A stretch of DNA of 63,935 nucleotides, counting the filler, from Intoshia linei (lineage: Eukaryota > Animalia > Orthonectida), in assembly GCA_001642005.1 (NCBI GenBank). It is 10 parts of 10 records of this genome, joined end to end, with 100 filler letters (N's around TTAATTAATTAA, not from the genome) between each part and the next. Parts side by side here need not be neighbours in the genome. Positions count along the whole stretch, not along the records: positions 12,583 to 31,228 come from LWCA01000768.1; 9 more parts are not named here. One strand, 5' to 3'. The translations under genes and the position numbers were made by a program. Shown in pieces: positions 12,583-31,228 of the stretch (position 1 is its first letter; each line of letters opens with the position of its first letter). The notes beneath the pieces are model-generated. The model did not search any database. It was not told the origin of the DNA and worked only from the letters and a program-made list of their open reading frames with translations.

Positions 12583-13162
12583 TAAATAATTTTTAATATA
12601 TTATCAACCATATTTTTCAAATATTTCGATTAAAATTAAAAATTGAAAATGTAAATATAGATGCTACAATTTCAAAAATTATGTGTATTGACGTCTACTC
12701 ATTTCCAGTCAAGACATATGGATGAAAATCTATATAATTCATTCCTTCGGAATCATTTTTCATTGCTACGCAATTTTGAAATCTCAAATTCTCATTTTTA
12801 AAACACTTCGTATAAAATTGAAATAAAAACTACAACAACGAAACTAAAAGTAATACAACTTTGTTATTATCATTTTTATATTTATTACAATCCTTTATAA
12901 TATTAGTAAAATTCGTTTGAAATATGTTTATAAAGTGAAGATTCCGTTAATTATTGATACATAATTGGTATTTTTAAGTATTTATTAAATTGGTACGGTT
13001 CTACCTGAAACAAGTTTGAGAACCACTCCTTTAAAGGATTGATAATAGTGAATAATATTTTTAAGTTAGATTTTCAACTTTAATTTATTTTTTTGTAGAA
13101 TAAAAATGTACTCTCGGCAGAGCTAGGTGATGTTTGTACGTAATACATAACAGTCAACCTAG
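12583..13162 (+). mobile_element. Helitron family A, 3' portion
   Basis: Family internal sequence, subterminal hairpin and CTAG|T end. Confidence 0.85.
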
Positions 13163-13705
13163 TTATAATATACTTAGCAATCATTTCTCGTGTAAAGTAA
13201 TTTAGTCAAAAATTTATGTCTGTTTTTAACCATTTATTGAAGAAACTAAGAGGCGTATAGTTTCAAATACATCAATTCCTAACAAACTTTTTCAATAGTA
13301 AGGTTTTATCGCAAATTTCATTTTCAGGAATTCAGTCTTTCAGGGTCAAAAGCCCAAATTACCCTTTTTAAAGAATAGGATGTGTCCTAGAACTTTGAAA
13401 AATATACATTCTGATACAAACTTTAAAAGCATCAGTATTATCATAAATTTCAACCTTAAACACTTATGAAACTTATATAACAGTGAAGGATCTTCCTGTT
13501 ACTTCACTGAAGGTACATACATATGTAGTAGAATATAATAAATAAATTAATAATTGTGATATAGGAATGGTAGGAGAGGGATATAAAGAGAAAGTCATTT
13601 ATTTTATTTAAAACAACGAATATTTCAAATTGAAGTTGTTAATTTCTAAATTGATCTATCTCGGTCAGTCTCTTGATATTATATTATAAAATTATATATA
13701 ATTTA

Positions 13706-16700
13706 CTTTTAATGAAATCATTCAATCCAATTGATTCAACAAATTCTCCTTTTTCTGAATATTGACTATACTTTATTTCATTGGTCATATCTTCAATCTA
13801 TTATTATAATATAGATATTTTGAAAACTTAATTTTATTTTACATCCTTTTCACTTGAATAATTTCCTAAAGCTTTCATCATGTAGGGAATTTCTTCTAAT
13901 AAAATGGTATCTCCAACACTACGAGTTTTGGTACTATTGACGCCCTCCCTGAAATGTATATTATTTATATATTATAATTTAACAAACCCCCTAATTTGAG
14001 CATGATAAAAAAAATCTTCAATTTCGTCCATTGTGAGATTTGTAGCTTCCACTATCATATTATGAAATGGTCGATTTGCATCCTTAGAATTTAAGCTAAT
14101 TTGTATATCCACGACACTAAATTTATAATTAATTAATTTTGATTATTTATTTTTTTTGTAAACTAATTTCAAATTTAATTTAAATTTAAAACAGTACTCT
14201 GTATTTATCAACCATTGATGAACGCATCCATCTTTACCACCGCACGTAAAAGCATATAATCCGTCACCACTTATTGCCACATCTACAATCTACGGGATAA
14301 ACAATATTAATACAACATATACTTCATCATGAGCCACATACACAATAGATTCTGCCGGGTCTCCGGAGGCTGGTAACAATTGTAAACCAATAATATTTTC
14401 ATTACTGAAAAATATGTAATGTTTTTTATTTGACTCTTCACTTTTATCAGATTTTGAGTATTCGATATTGTAATGATAAAATTTTGGTAGATTTATCATC
14501 CTAAATGTTTTGATAATAAATTATTAATAATTATTATTATATAATAATAAATTAATACACTTCAATTGCTAAACCTTAGCCAAAATTTCACTTTGGCATA
14601 AATAAAGAGTGATAATAGTGCAATAATACACTGATTATATTATTGATGCACACTGCATGTAGAATCTACAGTTGTACCCATTCTATTCCGCAGGTATAAT
14701 ATAATGTACATGGTATATCATTGTATTGTTAACATACATAATTCATTATAATCAAACCTTTTGATTTTAGAAGCATATATTGGTGCTAGAATAGTTTTTC
14801 GGCACATTTTAGTGTCTGAGTTGTACAATTTAAATTTTAGCTATTTAAATTAAAATTAAAAAATATATAGTACATATCATGGGGTGGTTCAGAAAATTTA
14901 TATAATTTTATAATGTATTTTTGAATTTATACAGGAAATTCTGTAAAATTTAGTTGTACATCTTGTTAGCATATAAAAAAATTATTCCTTCAGAAGATCA
15001 GCGCTGTTTAAACTTTAACCAATTAGTGACAAACCGATTTTAGAATTGTTCAAACATCATTATTTTTGAAATAGGTAGTTAAAAAATATATCAATAGAGC
15101 TGCAAAGATTCCAAGATATGAAGACAGTAAAAATGGATTAACTTAATCGTAATTAATTAAAATGTGTAGTAAATAGATTTTCTATTGATATGCCCCTTTT
15201 CTACAGATTTTTCGGAAATTTCATGTACTTTTACATCCAAAATTTTAATCAATCAGTCAAAAATTTTAATTATAATTAATTATAGAAATAAATATCCAAT
15301 TTCACCTTAATTATCAATTAATTTACAGCTGAAAAAATTGGTATCACGTTACTCCCAAATTTTTGTGTAATTTGACCAGCGAGTGAAAAAGGTTGACCAC
15401 ATACCTCATCATTGATAGTTTGAATAAAACATTCATTGTTAATTGCAGGATGCCATATCATTGCAATAGGTCGTGCAACCAATTCAATTCTGTCATAGCC
15501 TACAATTTTTAAACATCCCTTCTTGAGTTCATTTGAATTTTCTTCATCAACACTTATATTCAATTCATCACTATCCAAATTTATGGAATATTCAACCTAT
15601 TATAACAATCAAATTTTATTTGCACAGTTATTATACAAAATAGTTACTAATAAAATATTATAAGATTTATAAAACATTAACATGATTAAACTCTTTCCCT
15701 TTATTCACATTTTAGAGTAGTGGTGCTCAATCTTTCTGTTTCGCAAAACACTATTATTTATTAGAATTTTTGTATAGAAATGTAATTTAATCTAATTAAT
15801 TTACTTTTTCCCTAATAATTTCTTAAATTCCTTATAATTATTCAATTTATTTACAATTTGTTAAAACAATAAGTTGATGATCTTAAAAACAATCAAATTA
15901 TTGTTACAACCCTAAAAAATCGTCATAAAAAACATTAATCCCAGAAAAAATGAAATATTAAATACCTGTAATATATAGTTTTTTCCATCATGCATGTTTT
16001 AAAAATCATCATAGAATTTATCCTAACTTATATAATATGCTAAGCGATTTTTGTTTGTGTGTGTGTGTTCAGCTTTATTTAAATAACTACCCGTCTATTT
16101 TATATAACTATCGAATTTTATACAGTTCACATTTTAATTACAGCTTTTTCCGGGACGTATAATAAGATAAATTTTAACCTCCCAAACTCACATCTTACGG
16201 GTCAAAAACCCCAGTTGTCCGTCTTTTTGAAAATTAAACGAGTTCAAGAATTTAAAAAAATATATACGCTAATACGGATTTTAAAATCATAAACATTATC
16301 ATAAATTTATAATTAAAAAAATTATATCTTCAGGGCCAAAACCCAAAATTACCCTTTTTTTTTAATGAAAACAGCGCTAGAATTTAAAAAAATTTACAGG
16401 TGGTACAGTTGTATCCTGTTAACACACACAGAAAATTTGAATCTGAATAAGTGATGACTTCATGGTCAAAAAATTTTAGTATTCATATATTTTTTTTCCA
16501 AAATATTTTATTAAAACAAAAAATGTGAAATAATTAACGGTCTGAAAATTAAAAAAAAAAATTATTTTGATAGAGCTTATTCCAGTTGATAAATACAAAA
16601 GTTCAACCCGAGAAATCTACGCATTCCTGATGAAAAATAATTTTAAATATATTATCCACCAATATTTTTCAAATATTTCGATGTGGATTGAACGTCTACA

Positions 16701-19700
16701 CATTTTCAATAAAAAAATATGGGTGAAAATCTATATAATTCATTCCTTCGCAATTTTTAAATTTCAAATTCTCATTTTCAAAACATTTTGTATAAAATTT
16801 AAAATTAAGTTTAGTATATAATCCTGCAAAAAATCGTCACAAATAAGAACACAACCATCTTTTACATCAAAACTTGACAAAACTTTGTTCATATGATCTT
16901 CATTATAATCAGCCGAATCACTAGATATAAGAATAGAACCGGTAGATTTAATAATAACATCTGGTTCTTTTAATAACAATTCATTTATTAATATCACATC
17001 TTGAAAGTATTTGAGTTTAAAATTCTTTACGCAAATTTTAATAAAAAAAATTAAGATGGAATAATTCGCTTTAATGTAAAAAGTAATGTGATATGATGGT
17101 TCCATCTGACACCAATTTGGGAACCATTCCTTTAAAGTGAATAGTAGGATTTTTAAATTAGATTTTCAACATGAATTTATATTTTTGGTATAATAAAAAT
17201 GTACCCTCGGCAGAGCTAGGTCCTGTTTGTACGTAGTACATAACAGTCAACTTAGTGCATTATAAAATATTAGGACTTTTTTCATTTTTAAAAAAAGATT
17301 TGTGTTTTGACTATGAAGATCTAAGTTTCAGAGTCATAGATTTACGACAATATAATGCCAATCAAACGTGTTCTAGAATACTTGTTTTTATATCTTATTT
17401 TAAATTTAAGGGTTGATTTTATTTCTAAATTAAATTGTATATAAGTAAAGGATCTAATGTATATTCTTTTTTTGGGATTAAAAGGTTTTTTCAATACAAT
17501 CGTAGGGTCCAAAGCGAAAAAGGATTGGGAATACATGGTATAGTCACTATACTATAATGTAACAAATCAAAGTCTCAAACAAATCAGTAACTGGTTATTA
17601 ATATGGTTACTTTGAAATGTCTGGGAATATTCAAAATAGTTTAAAGGTTAAGGTGAGATGTGTAAGTAAAGATAGATACGTATACCGATATAGATACGCG
17701 AGCACCCTACTATGTTTACATACATTGCAATATATGTAGCATTACGAATTGTAAAAAATTGTAACTACCCTGAATATATAAATTATATAGATACTAACCA
17801 AATGTCTATCATGACTTAATGAAAGCAATCTAGGTAATTTTGTAACAACGTCTTCACCAAATAAAATGTCCACTATAGGTCCATAATGTGCTCGGTGACG
17901 TCCTCCAAAAAGCCAATCTGAACCAAATGGTTTTGTGTCATCTTTTTTTTTGTAAAATAATGTTATCGACCAATCCTCATTCTAACAATGTAATATAAAT
18001 ATAGGATAATAATAATATACATTTTGTAAACTATAAAGAATGAACGCCATGTTTCATATACATAACATAAATTATAAATGTGAAATAAACAAAATATTAC
18101 ATATGTAACTATATATTTGCCACAAGAAGAATAAATAATTTTTATAATTTGCGCTTTTGCAAAATTTAAAGGTTTTTCAATAACACTTTCTAGTGTAATA
18201 GCATTCACAATGTGTAAATTTCCGTTTAATGTTCCGATAACCAATATTGAACCATTATTTGGTTCATAGCACATGCTCGTTATTGCGACTTGGCCAAAAT
18301 TTTGACAACATATCGTTTTTCTAATATTTAGAATATAATATATTTTATATTTATATTTATTTTCATTTTTATGTTATGTCACGTACATAAATCTTGTATT
18401 ATACCAATTGACAAGATTTTCAATTAATTCTGTATTTATATAAAATTGAATGTCTGCGTGTGTGTATGTTACCGTTTATTTAAAACGATAACCATCCGCG
18501 CATTTTAAACAACCCATTGTCTAATATAGTTTATCGAAAGTCATGTTTTTATGAAACTTACATTTTCAGAAATTGAGTCCTTCAAGTTAAAAAACATAAT
18601 TTGCTTCTATTTTTTTAAAATAAAATGAGCCCTACTATTTAAAAAGCATACATACTAGGACGCGCTTTAAAGTCATTAACATTGTCGTAAATCTCAGCCT
18701 CTTAAATATGTATCTTCATGGTGAAACGCCAAATTATCCTGTCTTAAAAATGAAACATGTCCTAAATTTGTATAAAACATAAATTCTGGGATAGTTTTTA
18801 AAATCATAAATAAAAACCTCAAAAAAAAATAATAATTTTCCCGATCAAAATCCACACTACCATTTTTTTTAAATGAAAACTGTCTTAGAATTTAAAAAAA
18901 ATTACAGATCGTACAGTTGTATCCTGTTAACACACACAAAAAATTTCAATCCGAATAAGTGACGACTTCACGGTCAAAAAAGCATTTTAGTATTCACATA
19001 TTTTTTTTCGAAATATTTTATTAAAACAAAAAATGTGAAGTAATTAACGGTCCGAAAATTAAAAAAAAGATTAATCTGATAGAGCTTATTCCAGGTGATA
19101 TAAATACAAAAGTTTAAACCGAGAAATCTACGCATTCCCAATGAAAAATAATTTTTAATATATTATCAACCAATATTTTTCGAATATTTCGATTAACAAA
19201 TGTAAAATAAAAAATAAATACTGTTTGTACGAAATACATAACAGTCAAGATTGTTAATACTATAAATAAGCAAGTGAAAAATTATTACTTATTAATATAG
19301 TGGTATATTTTTACATAACCATCAGTTGAGCCAACCGCCAAATTTTTTCTAAAATTGATCATTATATATTAATTGTAAATTTATATAATTGTCTATCCAT
19401 CATCCCAAAATTAATCTGAAAATATTAAAAGTATTTTTGTATACATTATGGCTTTATAATTATACTTATTGAATTTGAATTTATTACAATGTTGAATTTG
19501 TTGTAATTGACACTAGAGGATTTTTAAATTCTTTAATAATAATCTAAGATATGATTATAAAAATAATAATAATAATCGATACTTCAAAATCATTTCTTTT
19601 AGTATTAAATCGCGATATGATACTACTTGTCGAGCTGATTACAAAACTGTCAATAATAAATTTTTTTGTATTTATTGTAGCGTCATCAGAAATCATGGAT

Positions 19701-22700
19701 AAATCTTTTTCGTCTATATCGGAATTTCTAAAATATGAAACGTTGAAACTAATCTCTTGTTACAATTTGGATTCAGATTTTTTGTCAAAAGAAAGTGAAA
19801 CAATATTTTCTACTACACAATTTGAGTACCAATTTAGCAATTTTGTAGATTGATCAAAAAATTTAAGAGTACCACTCTCTCCACCAATAGCCAATATACT
19901 AAAATGTGAACATTATATATTACATACTACTATCTATATTAGTATTATTATTTATAAATTAAAAATTGGTAAATTACTCTTTATACACTTCCAAAACGTT
20001 AATGGCTTTTTCTTGTATTTGAATAAGTTTTAGAGATTTTTTAAATATTGGAGGCTGATTTAATTTTTCTATAATTTTACATTATAAAATGTTTTTTTAA
20101 TTTTATCAACCTTTTTCATTTATTATTGATGAATCCCACACTATTAATAAACCGTGACACGTCGCTGTTAGTGCCCGATATGGATATTGAGTTAAAAATA
20201 CACTTTGGGTAAAATTTCCAAGCACTTTATTATAATCTGAATTTGTTAATGGAGGTGAATAATTGTTAATTTCATCTTTTTCGTTGTTCAAATAATAAAA
20301 AATTGTATTGTTATCACTGTTTGATAGTAACTGTCTGTGATCCGTTTGATGAAATTTTAAAAATATCTACAAACAAATTAATAAATTAAATCTATTACAA
20401 ATAATTTAAAAAATAATAATTTTTATCTTAAATCTGAACTGAATGTAAATTTTTTCACTCATAAATCAAATTATTTAGATAACTCTCAATTATATAATAA
20501 AATATAACAAAATTTTAAATTTAAACAGATGAAAAGCTTTTAGCTTGAGAAAGTCGCAGTGATATCCTATAATAATTTGATAAGACCGCGCCTTCTAAAA
20601 ATTGCTAGTTAAAAGATGAATAATGAATACATTTTAAATTAAATTAAATTATTCATGCAACTACAACTATTGTATTCTGTTGCCCTAATTTATGACTAAA
20701 TAACAGAGTATTGATAATTTTGTGATTATATTTGTATTTTTTTCCATAATCTTTTACTTATATAAAATTGAATATCTGCGTTTACCGTTTATTTAAAAAA
20801 TTAAAAATCGTAGAATTTAACTAAACCCAATTTCTAATTAATTAATTAATTTCTAATTTTTTACAGTTTTTCGCGAGCAATGTTTATATATAAATTTTAT
20901 TTTCTAAAATTAAATTCTTCAGGGTCAAAAACCCAATTTTTTTTTTAAAAAAAATATAATGATCCCAAAAATTTAAAAAACCATAAATTCTGGAACACGT
21001 TTTAAAATTAATAACATTGTCGTAAATCTTAGTCTCAAAAACGCAGGCCTTCATGGTCAAAACCATAAATTACTCTTTTTTTAAAAATGAAAAATACCCT
21101 AAAATTTCATAAAACATAAATTCTGATAGTTTTTTAAAATCATAATCATTATCATAAATCACAACCTAAAAAGTATATTTTCACTATCAAAACACGATAT
21201 TATTTTTTTTAATTAAATTAAATATTTTAAAAGTTCTAGAATTAAAAATAACATTAAAGCGTATACCGTTATTTCCAGTTAACACACAAAAATTTTTAAT
21301 CTCACAAAGTGATGCCTTAAAGTTCAAAAAAAAACTTTGGTATTCATTTTTTTTCATTTGATAACTATTTTATTAAAACATAAAATTTATATTAATTAAA
21401 TGTCCAAGAATTTGAAAAAAAAATTATTCTGATGCAGCTTTTCAACCTCAAAAGTCTACGCTTTCTATGTCAAAAATAACTTTTAATATTAATAATAATA
21501 ACCTGATCATTATATTCTGCGAATATATCTAAAAACCATTTTGGATTATTTTGGTCTACGTCACTCCAATCATAAACATAAAGTTTCTACAAACAAAAAA
21601 ATTAATAAATATAGTTTATTATAAGTTAGCTGTTAATTTATTAATTAATGGCTAATAATAATATTACTTGATTGCTCTCTTCTCCACGATGACTTAATAT
21701 AGCTAAATATTTGAAATCGTGAGAAAAGGCAGCGTATACTATTCCGTTTTTAAATATTTCAAAATAAGTCCGAATTGGCACACTATATAACCATAATGAA
21801 TACAAATACATTGTATTTAATACAAAATGCACTGATAAAATACATTTTGAGACTTAAAGAATTGACAAATGCAAACCCACTTTTGGTATAATTTTAAACA
21901 AAACTTTAAAGAATAAAAATCTAAGGAAAGATTTTGTGCGTAACAAACTTGCTTAATCCTTTCCTTTTATTATATAAACTTAAATGTCTGTGTGTGCTAC
22001 CGTTTAATCAAAAAAGCAACAGTCATATTTACAATTTACAAAAACTCAATTTCTAATACAGTTGTTCGAGAGTGCTGTTTTATCGCAAATATTATTTTCA
22101 GAATTTGAGTCTTTCGGAGTTAAAAAACCCAATTTATCCTTTTTTTTATTAAAATAAAATAACCCATAGAATTTAAAAAATATAAATTCTGGGACGCGCT
22201 TTAAAATCATTAATGCTGTCCTACATCTCAGCCTCAGAAACTTACATATTCATAGGCAAAACCACAGATTATTTTTAATTATGAAAAGTCATAGAATTCT
22301 ATAAAATACTAGGTTGATTGTTATGTACTACGTACAAACAGCACCTAGTTATGCCGAGAGCACATTTTTATAATACTTTAAAAATAAATTCAAATAAAAA
22401 TAAATAAATACTATTCACTATTATCAATATTTTAAAGGAATGGTTCCCAAATTTGTGTCAGGTGGAACCATCGTATCATATTACTTTTTACTGAATTATT
22501 CCATCTTAATTTTTTGTTTGTTAACATTCAAAAGTAAAATAATAACAGTCCAATCCTAAAAATTGTAATAAATAGCATAAATTCCAGAAAAAATAAAACA
22601 ATTCAGTCGAATTTTATCGATATTGCAAAAGATTGTAATAAATATAAAAATGATACTAAGTTGTATTACTTTTAATTTCGTTGTTGTAGTTTAAGTTAAA

Positions 22701-24347
22701 ACAAAATATTTTGAAAATGAAAATTTGAAATTTAAAAATTGCGTAGCAATGAAAAAAATTTCAAAAGAATGAATTATGTAGATTTTTACCCATATTTCTT
22801 TATTGGAAATGTGTAAACGTTCACTGCACATTTTATTTGAAATTGTAGGATCAATATTTACATTTTCAATTTTTAATTTAATCGAAATATTTGAAAAATA
22901 TTGGTTGATAATATATTAAAAATTATTTTTCACCCGGGAATGCGTAGAGTTTTCGGGTTAAACTTTTGTATTTATATCAACTGGAATAAGCTCTATCAGA
23001 ATAATCAGGTTAAACTTTTGTATTTATATCAACTGGAATAAGCTCTATCAGAATAATTTTTTTTTTTAAATTTTCGAACCGTTAATTACTTCACATTTTT
23101 TGTTTTAATAAAATATTTCGAAAAAAAAATATGTGAATACTAAAATGTTTTTTTGACCGTGAAGTCGTCACTTATTCGGATTGAAATTTTTCTGTGTGTT
23201 AACAGGATACAACTGTATAACCTGTAAATTTTTTGAAATTCTAGGGCTGTTTTCATTAAAAAAAGAAGGTAATTTGGGGTTTTGGTCCTGAAGATATAAT
23301 TTTTTTAAATTTAAATTTATGATAATGTTAATGATTTTAAAATCCGTATCAGCGTATATATATTTTTCAAATTCTCGAACTCGTTTGATTTTCAAAAAGA
23401 GGGACAATTGGGGTTTTTGACCCGTAACATGTGACTTTGGGAAATTAAAATTATATTTGCGAACACCCCGGAAAAAACTGTAATTGAAATGAAGACTTTA
23501 TAAAATTCTAAGATGGGAGTTATTTAAATAAAGCTGAACACACACACACAAACAAAAATCGCGTAGCATGTTATATAAGTTAGGATATATTCTGGAATAG
23601 TTTTTAAAATTATGATCATAAATTATTATAAAGTGATATCTCAAAAACTTTTAATATCACGATCAAAACCACGTTATCCTTTTACTAAATAATGAAGTCT
23701 TAAACATTACTGTTTATAGAATTATTTCCAATTAACCTACGAAGAAAAATTTTATTGCACAAATTGATGCTTCCCTCGTCAAAACAATACTCTTGTATTA
23801 AATTTTTTTTTTGGTAACTATTTTATTAATCAATACGTGCCATACAACAATTCTAATTTTAGCTACAATCTCAAAATGTATTGATTTAAATTTTAACAAA
23901 TTGTAAATAATATTTTTCTAATAGTATACCATGTAGTAACGTCCCATATAATAAGTTTATTATTATATCCAATATCTGTTGTGGCCATCCATTTTTTGTT
24001 ATCAGTACACGTGATAAAACTGATTTTATTGCACTATATTTAAAAAAATATAAAATGTAATATAACACATACATGTCCCTTTAAAGTGGTTTGCGTCTTT
24101 TCTGATTCATCATAAATAATGGCACTTTTATTTGCAGCATAAGCAATTTTATTTATTTTTGAATCCGATAAATTAATTACAGGCAAATCATGATTATATC
24201 CAAAAGTCCAGAATATACTCTGTTAAATGTATTGAATTGTAATACATGCTATATGCATTTTAAATAAATTAATGCACTTACTAAAGCATCATTCTCGTTT
24301 ATTTTTGTATCACCATTATCAGTTTTTTCATTGGATTTAGCCGACAT
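13706..24347 (-). CDS. CFAP251: Cilia- and flagella-associated protein 251 (WD40 + EF-hand-like), multi-exon, last exon(s) not visible
   Basis: ATG at 24347, then WTFGYN...TLKGH, WD40 exons, GGRHRAHYGP, KIYHYNI..IGLQLLPASGDP, FTCGGKD, YHAQIR|..EIPYMMKALGNYSSE, matching WDR66/CFAP251. Confidence 0.8.
16021..17255 (+). mobile_element. Full-length non-autonomous Helitron (family A) carrying a captured UBA2 fragment, inside a CFAP251 intron
   Basis: A|TC 5' end with (TG)n microsatellite, 3' hairpin and TTAG|T end. Confidence 0.85.
16808..17017 (-). pseudogene. UBA2: Captured fragment of SUMO-activating enzyme subunit 2 (ubiquitin-fold domain)
   Basis: QDVILINELLLKEPDVIIKSTGSILISSDSADYNEDHMNKVLSSFDVKDGCVLICDDFLQDYIL aligns with my recall of UBA2 QDKIVKEKFAMVAPDV..GTILISSEE...KKLSEFGIRNGSRLQADDFLQDYTL. 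Confidence 0.8.
18429..19255 (+). mobile_element. Helitron family B (related, more diverged)
   Basis: TC...tatataaaattgaatgtctgcgtgtgtg 5' end. Shares internal blocks and a degenerate 3' end with family A. Similar copies at ~7800-8150, 20750-21490 and 21960-23840. Confidence 0.65.
22309..23585 (-). mobile_element. Full-length Helitron family A nested in a family B copy
   Basis: TC start at 23585 and CTAG end at 22309, inserted at A^T with no TSD. The rejoined flanks restore family B sequence. Internal ~52-bp tandem duplication at 22957-23057. Confidence 0.88.
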
Positions 24348-24653
24348 TATAAATATTAAGTCCAATTAAATATTTATATTTACTATGGATATCCATACAT
24401 ATAACAAAACAATTTTTAAATAAACAGACTTATATGTATATTATAACAATATTAATTTTTAATTTTTAGGATTTTTAATTAAGAATTAATCCCATTATAT
24501 ATTCCCAAGAGTTTACATGACATTATCAATTAAATTTAAATTTACATATTTGTAAATTTTTAATTCTGCATTGTTATCGCTGATAGTTACAATTTTTCGT
24601 ATTTAAAAATCCATGTTGCCGGATGATCAATTATATTTTAAAATTAGCTTGAA

Positions 24654-25976
24654 ATGATTATAACTTTATGCATTGTGGTTTTTTACCTTTCATTTGTAAT
24701 TTCAATATTTTTGTTTGGTGAGTGTAAACGTTTTTGCAACAACATTGAAAGCCACGAAAAAAACGAAATACTTGACTTGAGCGATGAGTTGAAAATTAAT
24801 ATAAAAGAGGATAATTTATTGCTGGTCATTGCACATCCTGATGATGAAATCATGTAACAATGAGAAATCAAGATTTAATAATTGTATAGGTTTTTTGGTC
24901 CCTTAATTCAAATATGCACTCTGAATGGTATCAGCTTAAAAATTCTTTGTCTATCAAACGGTAAATCTTAAAAAGTACAATTTAACAGACAGGAAATTAC
25001 GATGGAAAAGGAAAAATAAGAACAATAGAAATGAAAAATTCACTTGAAAAAATGGAAATATCTAAAGATTCCTTCGTTATTATCGATAGCCCGTAATTTA
25101 ATTCTAAAATGCCAATATTATCAATGACATTATCCCAGATACCTTAAAGATGGACCAAGTATTGATTGGGATCAAAAAGTAATTTGGAAAATTTTAGAAC
25201 AATACACGCTTAAATGGAAAATTAATAAGGTATTCAATAAATTTCATAATTATAATTGCCATTAGATATTCACATTTGATGAATACGGAATAAGCGGGCA
25301 CAAAAATCACAAATCTGTTCACAAAGCCGTAAAATCATACAAGTAAATTTGAAATTTTTATTACATCAATTTGCAACTTTCTTGTTATTCTTTTTTGCGT
25401 ACTTCATATTCCTCACATATTTTTGTTCCAGCTAAAAATTACTAACAAATTTATAACAATTATTACCCCACGCAAACTCATTTTAAGTTGTCTTTTTGGT
25501 TTCTTGATTCCACCTCTATGGTCCTTGCGATCTATACGTTTAAATTAATGTTACATTTTAATTACTCTGATGGTGGTGACTTGTATTTTTTGATTTCGCC
25601 ATTGATTTGAACGATAAAGTATTTTGTGTAAATTGACAAGGCAAAGTAGATTTGTTAACAAAGTTATTTTTATATATCAATTTTTACAATTTAAATTTTT
25701 TAGTATTAATTGTGATAAATTTTACCTGGAGTCTGTTGGATTAATTAGAAAATATGTGATTTTAGTTGATTTTTATTTTTGGATATTTGAAAAAAATATT
25801 ATTGTGAACGGATTTATTGAACGCTTTAAAATATGGGTAATTTTATTAAATATTTATACACATTTATTTAGCGAGCATTTAAAGAGTACAAATCACAGGC
25901 AGTTTATTACAGATACTTTTATAATATATTTTCACGATACACTTTGGTTAACACATTCAAACGCATAAAAATTTAA
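24654..25976 (+). CDS. PIGL: N-acetylglucosaminyl-phosphatidylinositol de-N-acetylase, 7 exons
   Basis: N-terminal TM, LLVIAHPDDEIM|FF, LCLSNGNYDGKGKIR, TFDEYGISGHKNH, SQ..YYR..SRY. Confidence 0.93.
25366..25602 (-). CDS. RPL29: 60S ribosomal protein L29 (eL29), exons 25566-25602, 25467-25531, 25366-25431, nested in a PIGL intron
   Basis: MAKSKNTSHHHQNRKDHRGGIKKPKRQLKMSLRGLEQKYVRNMKYAKKNNKKVAN* (55 aa). GT-AG introns of 34 and 35 nt; AATAAA just after the stop. Confidence 0.93.
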
Positions 25977-26020
25977 TAGATAACAAAATATACAGCTGTT
26001 ATAAACCATTTAAAATAAAA

Positions 26021-29000
26021 TTAATAACGAACGTGTTTATTGATTGATAACGAATTTACCCAATGTGATACAATCCATTGAGGGTTGTTGTTGATTTTAT
26101 CTACATAATCTATCAGCTCATTTACAGTTGATTTTGCTGTTTCGTTAATTATAACTTTTTCAAAAAAGTTGTAATAATTTTTCTTTAAAAAGTTGGCGTG
26201 GTGGTTTATTTCTGATGTGTTTTCCTCCTAATAATGTTATACGTGTGCAAAAAAATGTTATTACCTTGTAGTAGGCTTCGCGAAGGTTTGGTTTGTGCGA
26301 AGAGGGTAAAATAAGTACCATAATAGGCTTCAAGTTTGAAAGGTAAAGTCGTAATATTGCCTAAAATATAGTTTATATTATTTATAAGCCCTATTAAATT
26401 GAGTATACATTAATGTGTTTAATTTAGTTTTTTTAGAAACTCAGTAAGTACTAAATACAGTTTTACAAAATAAAAACTTACTTTTTTCAATTTTTCGTAA
26501 AAAATAACTTTAAAAAATTTGATGAATTTTCAGTTTTCGCTTACAAAAATAGAAAATTAAAATCATAAAATTAATAGCTGATTTTCGACGGAAAAAGAAA
26601 ATACAATATATTATTTCCAATAATTAAATAAGTGATATTTAGAGGAAGATAATTAACATTTTTAGCTAGTTTTATCAGTTTGAATATAATGACAGGTTAA
26701 CCCACATACGTACTTTTCAATTTTTAAAAATGGCATACCCTAATGTGAATGTAATAATATATTATATTTACCTCTTCTTCAAGATTTATAACACAGTTTC
26801 GGTTGGATTTCATTACACTTTCTACCGATGAAAATGTGGTACCATAATAATGTTTATTAAATTTCCCATATTCAATAAAACAATTATCGTTTACTAAAGA
26901 CCAGAATTTATTTTTTCCGATAAAATGATAGTCAAGACCATTAATTTCATTGTTTTTTATTTTGCGAGTGGTATCTAAAATTAATTATAGAGTTTTATAA
27001 AAGATTTCAACGTTGTTGACTTTGTGGGCGCTTTAAACTTTGCTATTAGTTCTGATGTCCCTGTTCTGATTTATGATATTCGATTGATTCCAGAATTTTG
27101 GTTTGGATTGGTTTCACCAATAATTAAAATTTTTGTAATTTAAAAAATTCGATACAAATCTCGACTTTTAATACAGTTTAATGTAGTGTTTCCTAACCGT
27201 GGGACTAGACCCCAGTGGTGGGGCTTAGGAAATGTCACGAATTTATTCCAATTATGAAGACTTTAAATTAATTAAATGTTAATTTTATACAATAATGGCG
27301 TGACTTATTTATTTCGTACAAACAGCAGCTAGTTGTGTCGAGATCCGACTTTTTAATTGATTTTAAGTTTTGATGTTGTGATTTATGATAATACTCATGA
27401 TTTAAAAAATGTCGATAATTTATCCTCACTTATATAATATGCTACGCGATTTTTGTTTGTGTGTTACGCTTTATTTAAATAATTACCCGTTTTAGAATTT
27501 TATAAAGTCCACATTTCAATTACAGTTTTTTCTGGGGTATGCACAAACATAATTTCAACTTTCCAATTTCACATCTTACGAGTCAAAAACCCCAGTTGTC
27601 CTTCCTTTTGAAAATCAAACGAGTTAAAAAATTTAAAAAAATTATATCTTCAGGGCCAAAACCACAAATTATCATTCTTTTTTTAATGAAAACAGCCCTA
27701 AAATTTCAAAAATTTACAAGTTGTACAGTTGTATCCTGTTAACACACATAAAAATTTTCAATCTGAATAAGTGACGAATTCATTGTCAAAAAAGCATTTA
27801 AGTATTCATATATTTTTTTTCCGAAATATTTTATTAAAACAAAAAATGTGAAATAATTAACGGTCCGAAAATTAAAAAAAAAACTATTCTGATAGAGCTT
27901 ATTCCAGTTGATATAAATACAAAATTCAACCCCAGAAATCTACGCATTTCCGGTGAAAAATAATTTTTAATATATTATCAATCAATATTTTTCAAAAATG
28001 TGCCCTCGGCAGAGCTAGGTGCTGTTTGTACGTAGTACATAACATTTAACCTAGTGTTTTATTTGTTAACTTAGTGTCCTTGTTGGAAATCGCATTGGTT
28101 ATCAAAATTTTCCAACGTTACCTATTAATACATTACAAAAGTAGACCCCTCGTGATTGTAGAAACGGTTATATGGCCTCTAGCTCCTCTCTTTACCAATA
28201 AAAATGGAATTTTCAACCTATATTTTTGAATCTGAATTCGGGGTGGCAAGTCATTACTAAGAACTAAAAAAATTACGTGGAATAGCGGCTCCAAACTTGT
28301 TTGGATTTTTCATAATAAGAGTTTTTCTAATTTCGTGTCTTCCAATATTATGAGGACCAAATAATATAAGAGGTCTTCTTTCGGTTGGTACAGGATAGTA
28401 CTTAACAACTTGTTCATAAGGCACATTAATATCATAGTATTTAATTCCTGCAGGAGATCTAGCCAATTGGCGGCGCATGGATAACTCTATGCATGTAGAA
28501 AAATCTTCAATATTTTTTAAAGGTATATTTGTAATGGCAGTTTGTAATTTACTTTCAAGTCGACTTTTAGCAGTTTCGAAAAATTCATTAACAGGATTCA
28601 TCCTTGTAAAAGTGTTTTTCTTTTTAATTTTAGATTTTGCAAACGTATTGATCCAACGTTGCACATAAAACCGTGAATTTATTTTTAAACTTAGCCACAA
28701 ATACCTACAAAGATCGGTCATTGAACTAGGATTAGTGTCTTGATTGTTTTGTTGGTTATATGGTCGATTGTGACTTGAGTAATCTGAAATATCTGCCAAT
28801 CCGTTATTATTCATAAACGGCTCAATACAACATGCCATTCCAAAACACGGCCACCGGGAGCGAAGTTCTTGTTGATATTCTATCCTTTTGATTTCGTATT
28901 TTGCTATCTCTAGACGTCTATGAAAAGAAGCAGAAGGAATGAGTCCTGCCAGAGGTTGTGCATCTTCATCTTCCTTGAAAGCTTGCCACCAGTCTGTATT

Positions 29001-30386
29001 TTTTTCAGAATAAATATGCAAAATTTCGCCCTTATTAAAACTGATGCCCAACTCTCTACATGGGTTGTAAATATCATCAGTTGGATCATAATTGAAATTT
29101 GATTTAACTGAAATCAAATTTGATTCCGATTCCATTTGATTTACATTACACACTTCAGAATTTGGAAGGACAATCATGGTTAGTGGTCCAGAATACAAAT
29201 CCATAAAGTCAGCAACTTGATTTACTGTTTTACCTCGTAAATCTACACCATTGACTTCCAAAATTTCGTCTCCCACACGCAACAATTTGATTTTATCAGC
29301 AATTCCGCCCTTGATAATCTTTGAAACAATAATGCTGCCATCGTCGGCAGAAACGGTTAAACCCAAATAATCTGCAGACTTGTTGATTTTGATGATTTTA
29401 ATGGTATCAATTTCATCAACAACGTAATTTTCACTCTCCAATTCTTCATAATCACAGTGCGAATTTTGAAGTATATTAAGGCAATCATTATAAGCTGAAA
29501 ACAAGTGTTTTATTTTAAAATTTTTGATAGATTTTTGAATCCTGTTTACAGTATCCTTGCTTCTCGTGTTGCACTGTGAAAATAAATTAAATACATTGGT
29601 ATCGCTTATAAAAATATGAGAAAAAATTTTACTCTTGTCATTATCAAATGACGACAGAATGTTGTGCAATTTCAAAGCATTCTTAAAACTACGAGTACTG
29701 ACCAATAGATTTAGCTTGCAAAACTCATCTCTATCATCATCTGAAGAGACATATTGCTGCAAACTTTTTAAAAAATCGTAAACCTCACTTTCTTTTAATC
29801 CCAAATCATCTTTTTTCAAAGGATGCTCCGTAGTAATAAATCTTTCATTAAGTCGAAAACTGGGGTTTATATAAGATTCAACAATGTCGGGTTTATTTGT
29901 CTTTGGTTCAGTTTTCGATTTGCTTCTTTTGGAGGAATTTGTTTCCTTCATCAGTTGTCTTAATCGCTCTGAATTTCGTAATGAAGATTGTTCAGTTTCA
30001 GTTTTTGACATTTTACTTTTTCGTCGTTTTTCAACATAATTTTTGTATTTTTTAATACTGAGTAGTTGCATCTTTTTTTCTTCTTCAGTCAGTAACTGCA
30101 ATTTCTTTGATCTGTGATCAGAGTATGATTTTTTGAATTGAAACACATCTTTAAATTTATTGGTAACATGTGTAGTTTCATTTTGAAGAACTACCTGTTG
30201 CGAAGAAAACGTTTCACATTTTTCGCTTAAAATTTCCTTGTAATCTTTTTGGTCAAATCCAGCCGACAAGTCATCTATTCTATCGACACTACTCCACAAC
30301 GACTTTTGAAGGGGAACTATCGTAGCTGTCGGTGTTTCTAAATACAGTTATTTATTTTACATCTTTTTAGTACCTTTACAATTCAT
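26021..30386 (-). CDS. MPP5: MAGUK p55 family PDZ-SH3-GK protein (PALS1/stardust-like)
   Basis: PDZ (YLGLTV..GGIADK..LRVGDEILEVNG), SH3 (FNYDPTDDIYNPCRELGISF..WWQA), GK (RRPLILFGPHNIGRHE|DTTR..YGT..PQWI..W). Short first exon 30374-30386 and 3' exons ending at 26021. Confidence 0.85.
27423..28054 (+). mobile_element. Internally deleted Helitron family A (632 bp) in an MPP5 intron
   Basis: A|TC start, hairpin, CTAG|T end; cargo region absent. Confidence 0.88.
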
Positions 30387-30699
30387 TTTTGCTTAGAAAA
30401 TATGTAATCATTGATATGCTTAATGATGTGAAACATTTATTCTAATCTTGGTAACAGACGTTCACAAATGTAATTATGTTGATATAGAAATTTGTCATAT
30501 CTACTACAAATGTGTTTACTTGCTCAACGAATCCAGTCAAAGCTTAAATGTTGAAAGATGGATCGTTAATACAACATAATATTAAATTACTATAAATATT
30601 ATTGCTACAGTTACACTGTACTAGTCTTAGTTCATTTTATAATTTTATATAATCCAGTCAAATAAAAATTTATTATGTGTTCTTATACAATGTTAATAC

Positions 30700-31228
30700 A
30701 TTTTGTATAAAGAATTAGGCCGAAAGGAACCTATGGTGTTAACTTTTTTTTTAAATTTTTTTTTTTAATAATAATAATTTATTAAATGCAGGAAGCTTAT
30801 AACTGATTATGTCATTGTAGTTTATAATTATACATTAGTTTTTGAAGTGTTTTGTTGAGTAATTTTTTGAAAATTGGTGCGTGGGACGCGGTGACAATTG
30901 AAGTGGGAAGCCTATTCCAGTAATTTACAATCCTATTAAAAAATTGATTTCGATTGATGTCTGTATTGCATGTTTTTGAAAATTTTCCTGATGTTGGATC
31001 TTGTTTTTGTTTGGATAATTTTAATTTTGTTACGGTTGATAAATTTGTAAGTCAGGCGAAGATCCAGCATATCCCTACGGCTTTTAAGGCTTAGTAGAGG
31101 TGAATGTAAGGGTGATAGACGACATAGGAAGAACCGTTGAGCTGATTTCAGTTTGTTTATATTGATTATTGATATAGGATTCCATAATTGGGTGGCATAT
31201 TCCAGCTTAGGCAACACAAAAGTTGTAT
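30700..31228 (-). mobile_element. Non-LTR retrotransposon (CR1/L2-like) 3' end
   Basis: LPKLEYATQLWNP...KLKSAQR...LKSRRDMLDL, then a frameshifted FNRIVNYWNRLP. Confidence 0.8.

Follow-up and report, generated by a model that had tools for sequence, protein, structure and literature searches.

We analysed a stretch of 63,935 nucleotides from the orthonectid Intoshia linei (the window) and found that an old copy of a non-autonomous Helitron transposon at positions 16021-17255, lying in an intron of a CFAP251-like gene, contains a fragment of spliced UBA2 (SAE2) mRNA. The fragment occupies 219 nt on the minus strand (16798-17016), encodes most of the ubiquitin-fold domain (UFD) and is 98% identical to four UBA2 exons. 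Its template was spliced mRNA or cDNA and not the genomic UBA2 gene, because three introns are exactly absent from it. The best reading, to which we give a probability of about 0.6, is that a UBA2 cDNA patched a double-strand break in a resident Helitron copy, by reverse-transcript-mediated repair (RMDR) of the kind also described as class 2 templated sequence insertion.

The insert was compared with the UBA2 gene exon by exon. Read in the sense direction, from 17016 to 16798, it is made of 22, 55, 42 and 100 nt from four consecutive exons that are joined to the base, and three GT..AG introns of about 1052, 37 and 77 nt are missing. The first 22 nt (16995-17016, minus strand) are the end of the exon preceding exon A, found on contig C2790 (L017:2075-2096), with 22/22 positions identical and the donor GT coming next in the gene. 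They are followed by the 55-nt exon A (16940-16994, minus strand; C2347, L005:6040-5986), which has one mismatch at 16977, and by the 42-nt exon B (16898-16939, minus strand; L005:5948-5907), which has one mismatch at 16935 and lacks the 37-nt GT..AG intron before it. The remainder is the first 100 nt of exon C (16798-16897, minus strand; from L005:5829 downwards), joined without the 77-nt GT..AG intron and with mismatches at 16828 and 16804; homology ends within this exon. On the sense strand of the gene the 37- and 77-nt spacers both start with GT, end with AG and hold stops inside, and on the 5' side the homology to C2347 stops exactly at the acceptor site of the first block. The alignment to the human SAE2 UFD runs continuously across the exon joins. 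A gain of introns in the UBA2 gene was considered and rejected, as three gains are implausible at 98% identity and the spliced form aligns unbroken to human SAE2.

The whole assembly (41.6 Mb, 3520 contigs) was searched with the insert at the DNA level, and two loci only were found, the window and the UBA2 gene on contig C2347, where the match falls into three blocks of 98% identity separated by spacers of 37 and 77 nt. The first-pass annotation, which had read this stretch as a UBA2 piece missing from sibling Helitron copies and had looked to a separate, near-identical parental locus, was thus correct on both counts, with a single Helitron-flanked copy of the insert. The parental gene is a single UBA2 gene split over three contigs, with the N-terminal part, comprising the ThiF and SCCH exons, on C126 (C126:3911-8260, minus strand), the middle on C2790 (L017:1477-2096, plus strand) and the C-terminal part on C2347 (C2347:19717-20040, minus strand). 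The rest of UBA2 was looked for beside the matching exons on C2347 and was not found there. The final 123 nt of C2790 are 100% identical to C2347:20853-20975, which adjoins a single N at C2347:20976, and the third intron is therefore about 1052 nt long. Judging from this overlap, the further Helitron copy that lies past the N in C2347 was probably misjoined there or represents an alternative path. Further C-terminal UBA2 exons were located downstream of exon C in the gene. A search with the UFD profile PF14732 matched the same two loci only and revealed no other UFD locus or UBA2 retrocopy in the assembly; the motif GNIIPAIAT is present in UBA1 and UBA2 only.

A 113-codon open reading frame on the minus strand (16764-17105) runs through the insert into the Helitron on both sides. 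It matches the Pfam family UAE_UbL (PF14732) with E=1.3e-16 and 61.3 bits (cut-off 30.8), which bears out the antisense open stretch with UFD similarity reported earlier at about 16808-17017; the coordinates of the fragment are slightly refined here, to 16798-17016. The same frame matches human SAE2 UFD chains in the PDB with E=1.5e-8 over residues 456-532, the DDFLQDY motif included. Only the residues encoded by 16798-17016 are derived from UBA2. The 42 nt upstream of exon A, corresponding to residues 24-37 of the Pfam match, were tried as UBA2 sequence and rejected except for the last 22 nt, the remainder being Helitron family sequence. The UFD in the insert is truncated at both ends, and the ThiF and catalytic-Cys domains of UBA2 are not found at 16021-17255, where the UFD piece stands alone. 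The differences at 16977 and 16935 are synonymous, and the mismatch at 16804 falls inside the junction zone. At 16828 the gene has TCG (Ser) and the insert TTG (Leu). The assembled gene thus reads DDFSQDY (L005:5760 region, C2347) against DDFLQDY in the insert and in human SAE2, and since this Leu is the conserved residue of the motif, the change arose on the gene's side; the Ser could be explained by polymorphism, by an error in sequencing or by a recent substitution in the functional gene.

The element carrying the insert (16021-17255, plus strand, 1235 nt) belongs to a non-autonomous Helitron family that is very abundant and whose 5' and 3' termini coincide in dozens of copies. Genome searches with the element ends gave, at first look, 1758 candidates for the 5' part and 3906 for a query including the 3' module. 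Among the aligned copies that were fetched, the family starts with TC at the same base in 21/21 and is preceded by A in 19/21. At the other end, sibling copies finish in CTAG (15/17) or CTAA (2/17), with T as the next base in 17/17 and a hairpin palindrome kept in 17/17. The flanks of the family copies are otherwise unrelated, as in insertion between A and T without target-site duplication. The copy studied here has its TC terminus at 16021-16022 after a host A at 16020, and ends with CTTAG at 17251-17255 before a host T at 17256; this 3' terminus is degenerate and departs by a single base from the family consensus CCTAG (i.e. CTAG). Its subterminal hairpin (17223-17246, plus strand), obtained by DNA folding, consists of a stem of 10 bp, interrupted by one bulge, and a loop of three nucleotides (GTA), and is separated from the end by 9 nt; for the 70-nt 3' end as a whole the fold energy is unexceptional (z = -1.2). 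The Helitron ends and hairpin recognised in the first-pass annotation accordingly match those of the family.

We then determined where the family sequence is broken, by alignment with eleven siblings. Family homology reaches 16803 and resumes at 17016; in individual siblings the left flank extends to 16802-16808 and the right flank begins at 17016, or at 17003-17008 in some copies, so that both flanks continue in siblings as had been claimed. Between these junction points the siblings carry family sequence, of 237-778 nt in 10/11 (335-493 nt in seven of them) and of 161 nt in a reverse-oriented sibling within the window, compared with 212 nt in the copy at 16021-17255. The internal segment was therefore replaced by the insert, not merely interrupted, and about 335-490 nt of family sequence are missing from this copy. 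At the left junction, TTTAAA (16798-16803) is common to the family sequence and to UBA2 exon C, giving 6 exact nt, or 11-12 nt with one mismatch. At the right junction, where sibling homology resumes at 17016, a single T is common. The short microhomologies proposed for the two junctions are thus present on the left, but on the right amount to 1 nt only, which leaves that claim half as strong. No poly(A) or A-run, target-site duplication, LINE (long interspersed nuclear element) or SINE (short interspersed nuclear element) sequence was seen beside the insert. The 3' end of the mRNA is absent from the insert, which ends inside exon C. A LINE-type retrocopy made by target priming was for these reasons rejected, there being no poly(A) and no target-site duplication, and the mRNA fragment being internal.

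The UBA2-bearing chimera is present in one copy in the assembly. The 3' module of its element differs from a 20-copy consensus at 13/241 sites (5.4%) and by a 13-nt deletion, and the insert differs from the UBA2 gene at 3/214 positions (a divergence of 1.4-1.8%, for 3-4 positions). This difference (Fisher p=0.02), which counts few substitutions and uses a consensus of those copies that resemble the query most, makes the insert appear younger than the element around it; one of the three changes, that at 16828, belongs to the gene. Searches of the assembly with the Helitron Rep profile PF14214 gave no match, the control genomes being likewise silent, and one PIF1-like locus was found, on contig C2031. 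The suggestion that the Helitron had mobilised a captured piece is not borne out by the single copy, the apparently younger insert and this Rep search with its silent controls.

In the sequence of events that we favour, a non-autonomous Helitron would have inserted into the intron of the CFAP251-like gene, and a double-strand break would later have occurred inside this resident copy and been repaired by end joining. In the course of this repair about 335-490 bp from the interior of the Helitron would have disappeared, their place being taken by 219 nt copied from within spliced UBA2 mRNA. This patch may go back to a pre-existing cDNA made by one of the many reverse transcriptases of the genome, or to direct RNA-templated synthesis, and would have annealed through microhomology of 6 nt at one end and 1 nt at the other. 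The genome yielded more than 150 RVT_1 matches, many in open frames of 300-545 aa, which gives the coding potential for such an activity. The RNA origin, the replacement of family sequence, the structure of the junctions and the presence of a single copy are shown; the break, its date later than transposition and the enzyme behind the cDNA are the parts of this scheme that we infer. What is left is most probably an inert relic, resembling a pseudo-exon, whose frame has stayed open by chance.

Several points weigh against this reading. The break and the deleted segment are reconstructed from paralogous siblings whose internal length varies from 161 to 778 nt. One junction has just 1 nt of microhomology, and the age comparison counts few substitutions against a consensus of the copies nearest to the query. 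An identical sequence would also result if the filler had been acquired while the element was active and the element had then transposed once.

This last scenario is the main rival, and a possible though much less probable one. Patching of a break with cDNA would have taken place either in a donor copy or while rolling-circle transposition was under way, and the chimera would then have moved to the present site between A and T; the fragment would therefore be a true Helitron-borne capture, though derived from RNA. In its favour, the hairpin and the two termini have been preserved, internal acquisitions with junction homologies of 2-13 bp are what the Helitron filler DNA model predicts (PMC6544945), and intronless gene pieces within bat Helitrons are documented (PMC4224331). 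However, the insert is found in one copy only and is less diverged than the element, and the assembly yielded no Rep domain, in a search whose controls were silent, and one PIF1-like locus. Another way to an RNA template would be that a reverse transcriptase copying CFAP251 pre-mRNA, in which the Helitron is antisense, jumped to UBA2 mRNA and back, and that the chimeric cDNA converted the locus by homologous recombination. The UBA2 piece has indeed the same sense as the host transcript, reverse transcriptases are abundant and short homologies stand at both junctions, but the agreement in orientation is a 1-in-2 event, two jumps plus recombination are needed, and no neighbouring intron loss or conversion tract was seen, the flanks being ordinary diverged family sequence. 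We regard this path as unlikely.

It is very unlikely that the patch is now a functional exon, either as a UFD-like module spliced into CFAP251 or as a small new gene. The 113-codon frame is open in sense with the host gene and the conserved DDFLQDY motif is retained, but any young in-frame copy that has undergone only two to four substitutions should still be open, the ratio of nonsynonymous to synonymous substitutions (dN/dS) has no power here, and the domain is truncated at both ends. An assembly or library artefact, in which cDNA-derived and genomic reads were chimerically joined, has in its favour a fragmented assembly, with UBA2 spread over three contigs and a doubtful join at a single N. 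It is highly improbable, because a graph mis-join needs overlaps far longer than the 6 and 1 nt at these junctions, the insert differs from the gene at 3-4 positions, and the collinear host gene continues on both sides for kilobases without an N. The first-pass annotation had proposed capture by template switching or filler-type repair, of which filler-type repair fits the data, but template switching in Helitron replication as a means of capturing UBA2 from genomic DNA, for all its agreement with the Helitron context and the microhomologies, is hardly tenable unless the assembly misses an intronless UBA2 copy, as three introns are missing to the base, one of them of about 1 kb, and genomic capture would keep them.

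Repair of a break with a UBA2 cDNA has close counterparts among known systems. In mouse zygotes, spliced Pcnt and Inadl fragments were captured at breaks with microhomology and no poly(A) (2015, PMC4516963), and the same traits mark class 2 templated sequence insertions in humans (Onozawa & Aplan 2016, PMC5110952). The present insert resembles these cases in being an internal, intron-skipped mRNA fragment of spliced exons, truncated at both ends, without poly(A) or target-site duplication, bounded by short microhomologies and accompanied by loss of target sequence; in such insertions either orientation is possible. Unlike them, it is a fixed natural event in a transposon copy of a small, AT-rich invertebrate genome, in which the break, the enzyme and the germline timing would have to be supplied by the scheme above. 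The Helitron filler DNA model has the same geometry with a genomic DNA template (PMC6544945), and shares with our case an internal acquisition in a Helitron, short bounding homologies and untouched termini; the differences are that here the template is spliced RNA or cDNA, the chimera is not amplified and an internal family segment is lost. Thomas et al. (2014, PMC4224331) scored four cases in bat Helitrons, bearing target-site duplications as well as poly(A), as retroposition by LINE-1 and treated other intronless fragments as captured pre-existing retrogenes; all cases were amplified, with 118 copies for the four retroposition cases. These retrogenes, as our insert, are multi-exon, intronless host-gene sequence inside a Helitron, but ours occurs once, has neither poly(A) nor a target-site duplication, and has no retrocopy as its counterpart elsewhere in the assembly. 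A target-primed processed pseudogene is likewise an intronless mRNA copy, but the insert lacks the 3' end of the mRNA, the poly(A) and the target-site duplication, and it replaced target sequence.

The host locus lies on contig C1827, which forms positions 12583-31228 of the window and has about 25% G+C. Minus-strand exons of a WD-repeat gene match, in collinear order, CFAP251/FAP251 chains of axoneme structures (best E=3.4e-6), in agreement with the earlier placement of the UBA2 piece in sense orientation inside a CFAP251-like intron. The exon at 20106-20291 (minus strand) corresponds to about residues 425-474 of 8j07_d2 with E=3.1e-5, the best chain being 8glv_LY with E=3.4e-6. The exon at 17963-18274 (minus strand), the upstream flank of the Helitron intron, gives weak CFAP251 matches at about residues 657-712 (about 657-870 over the chains overall), and that at 14143-14280 (minus strand) corresponds to about residues 897-922. 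The open frame at 15318-15578 (minus strand) has no PDB match and is the likely downstream flanking exon of the host gene. The Helitron and its UBA2 patch are located in the intron between the exon at 17963-18274 and this open frame, and the patch is in sense with the host gene.

At least four further copies or fragments of the same Helitron family were seen in this 18.6-kb piece, at 12583-13162 (plus strand), 18455-19253 (plus strand), 22284-23593 (minus strand) and 27417-28054 (plus strand). One of these additional copies is cut by the contig start, one is short with an internal deletion and the 3' end of one is degenerate. As far as 23593 they sit between exon-like frames, that is in introns, of the CFAP251-like gene, and the copy at 27417-28054 lies beyond them. 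In the same genome, UBA2 has introns as short as 37 nt. Within the reverse-oriented sibling, a 52-nt unit is tandemly duplicated at 22946-23049 (92% identical), and two siblings (L024 and L033) are longer in their interior by about 400 nt, part of which is a partial duplication of their own sequence; the internal region of the family is prone to rearrangement. Another repeat, at 15900-16001 (plus strand), is 88% identical to C2812:28421-28522 and ends about 20 bp upstream of the Helitron 5' end, and in some family copies the homology extends back to about 15997, which suggests a composite element or a preferred insertion context. Elsewhere on the contig, an uninterrupted 680-codon frame at 28257-30299 (minus strand) encodes PDZ and SH3 domains and the start of a guanylate kinase domain, as in a MAGUK-type scaffold protein, an unusual length for a single exon in an intron-rich region. 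An open frame at 30936-31217 (minus strand), cut by the end of the piece, resembles the region downstream of the reverse transcriptase domain in retrotransposons of the non-LTR (long terminal repeat) type, with no Pfam match.

The insert provides a clean natural patch of spliced mRNA fixed in a germline genome outside mammals and yeast, and its source gene, its two junctions and the target sequence that was lost are all open to reconstruction. It gives a warning that gene fragments borne by Helitrons are not all Helitron captures, and that a check of introns against the parental gene tells a DNA-level from an RNA-level origin. It is doubtful that spliced-cDNA filler is a regular route by which exon-only gene pieces enter this very abundant Helitron family, and breaks generally in a compact genome rich in reverse transcriptases, with the present copy as one that could be spliced into CFAP251 transcripts; such a route would be an RNA-templated version of Helitron filler-DNA capture, able to shuffle ready-spliced domains. 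If events of this kind recur in the genome, the shuffling of exons within DNA transposons would be tied to the activity of reverse transcriptases.

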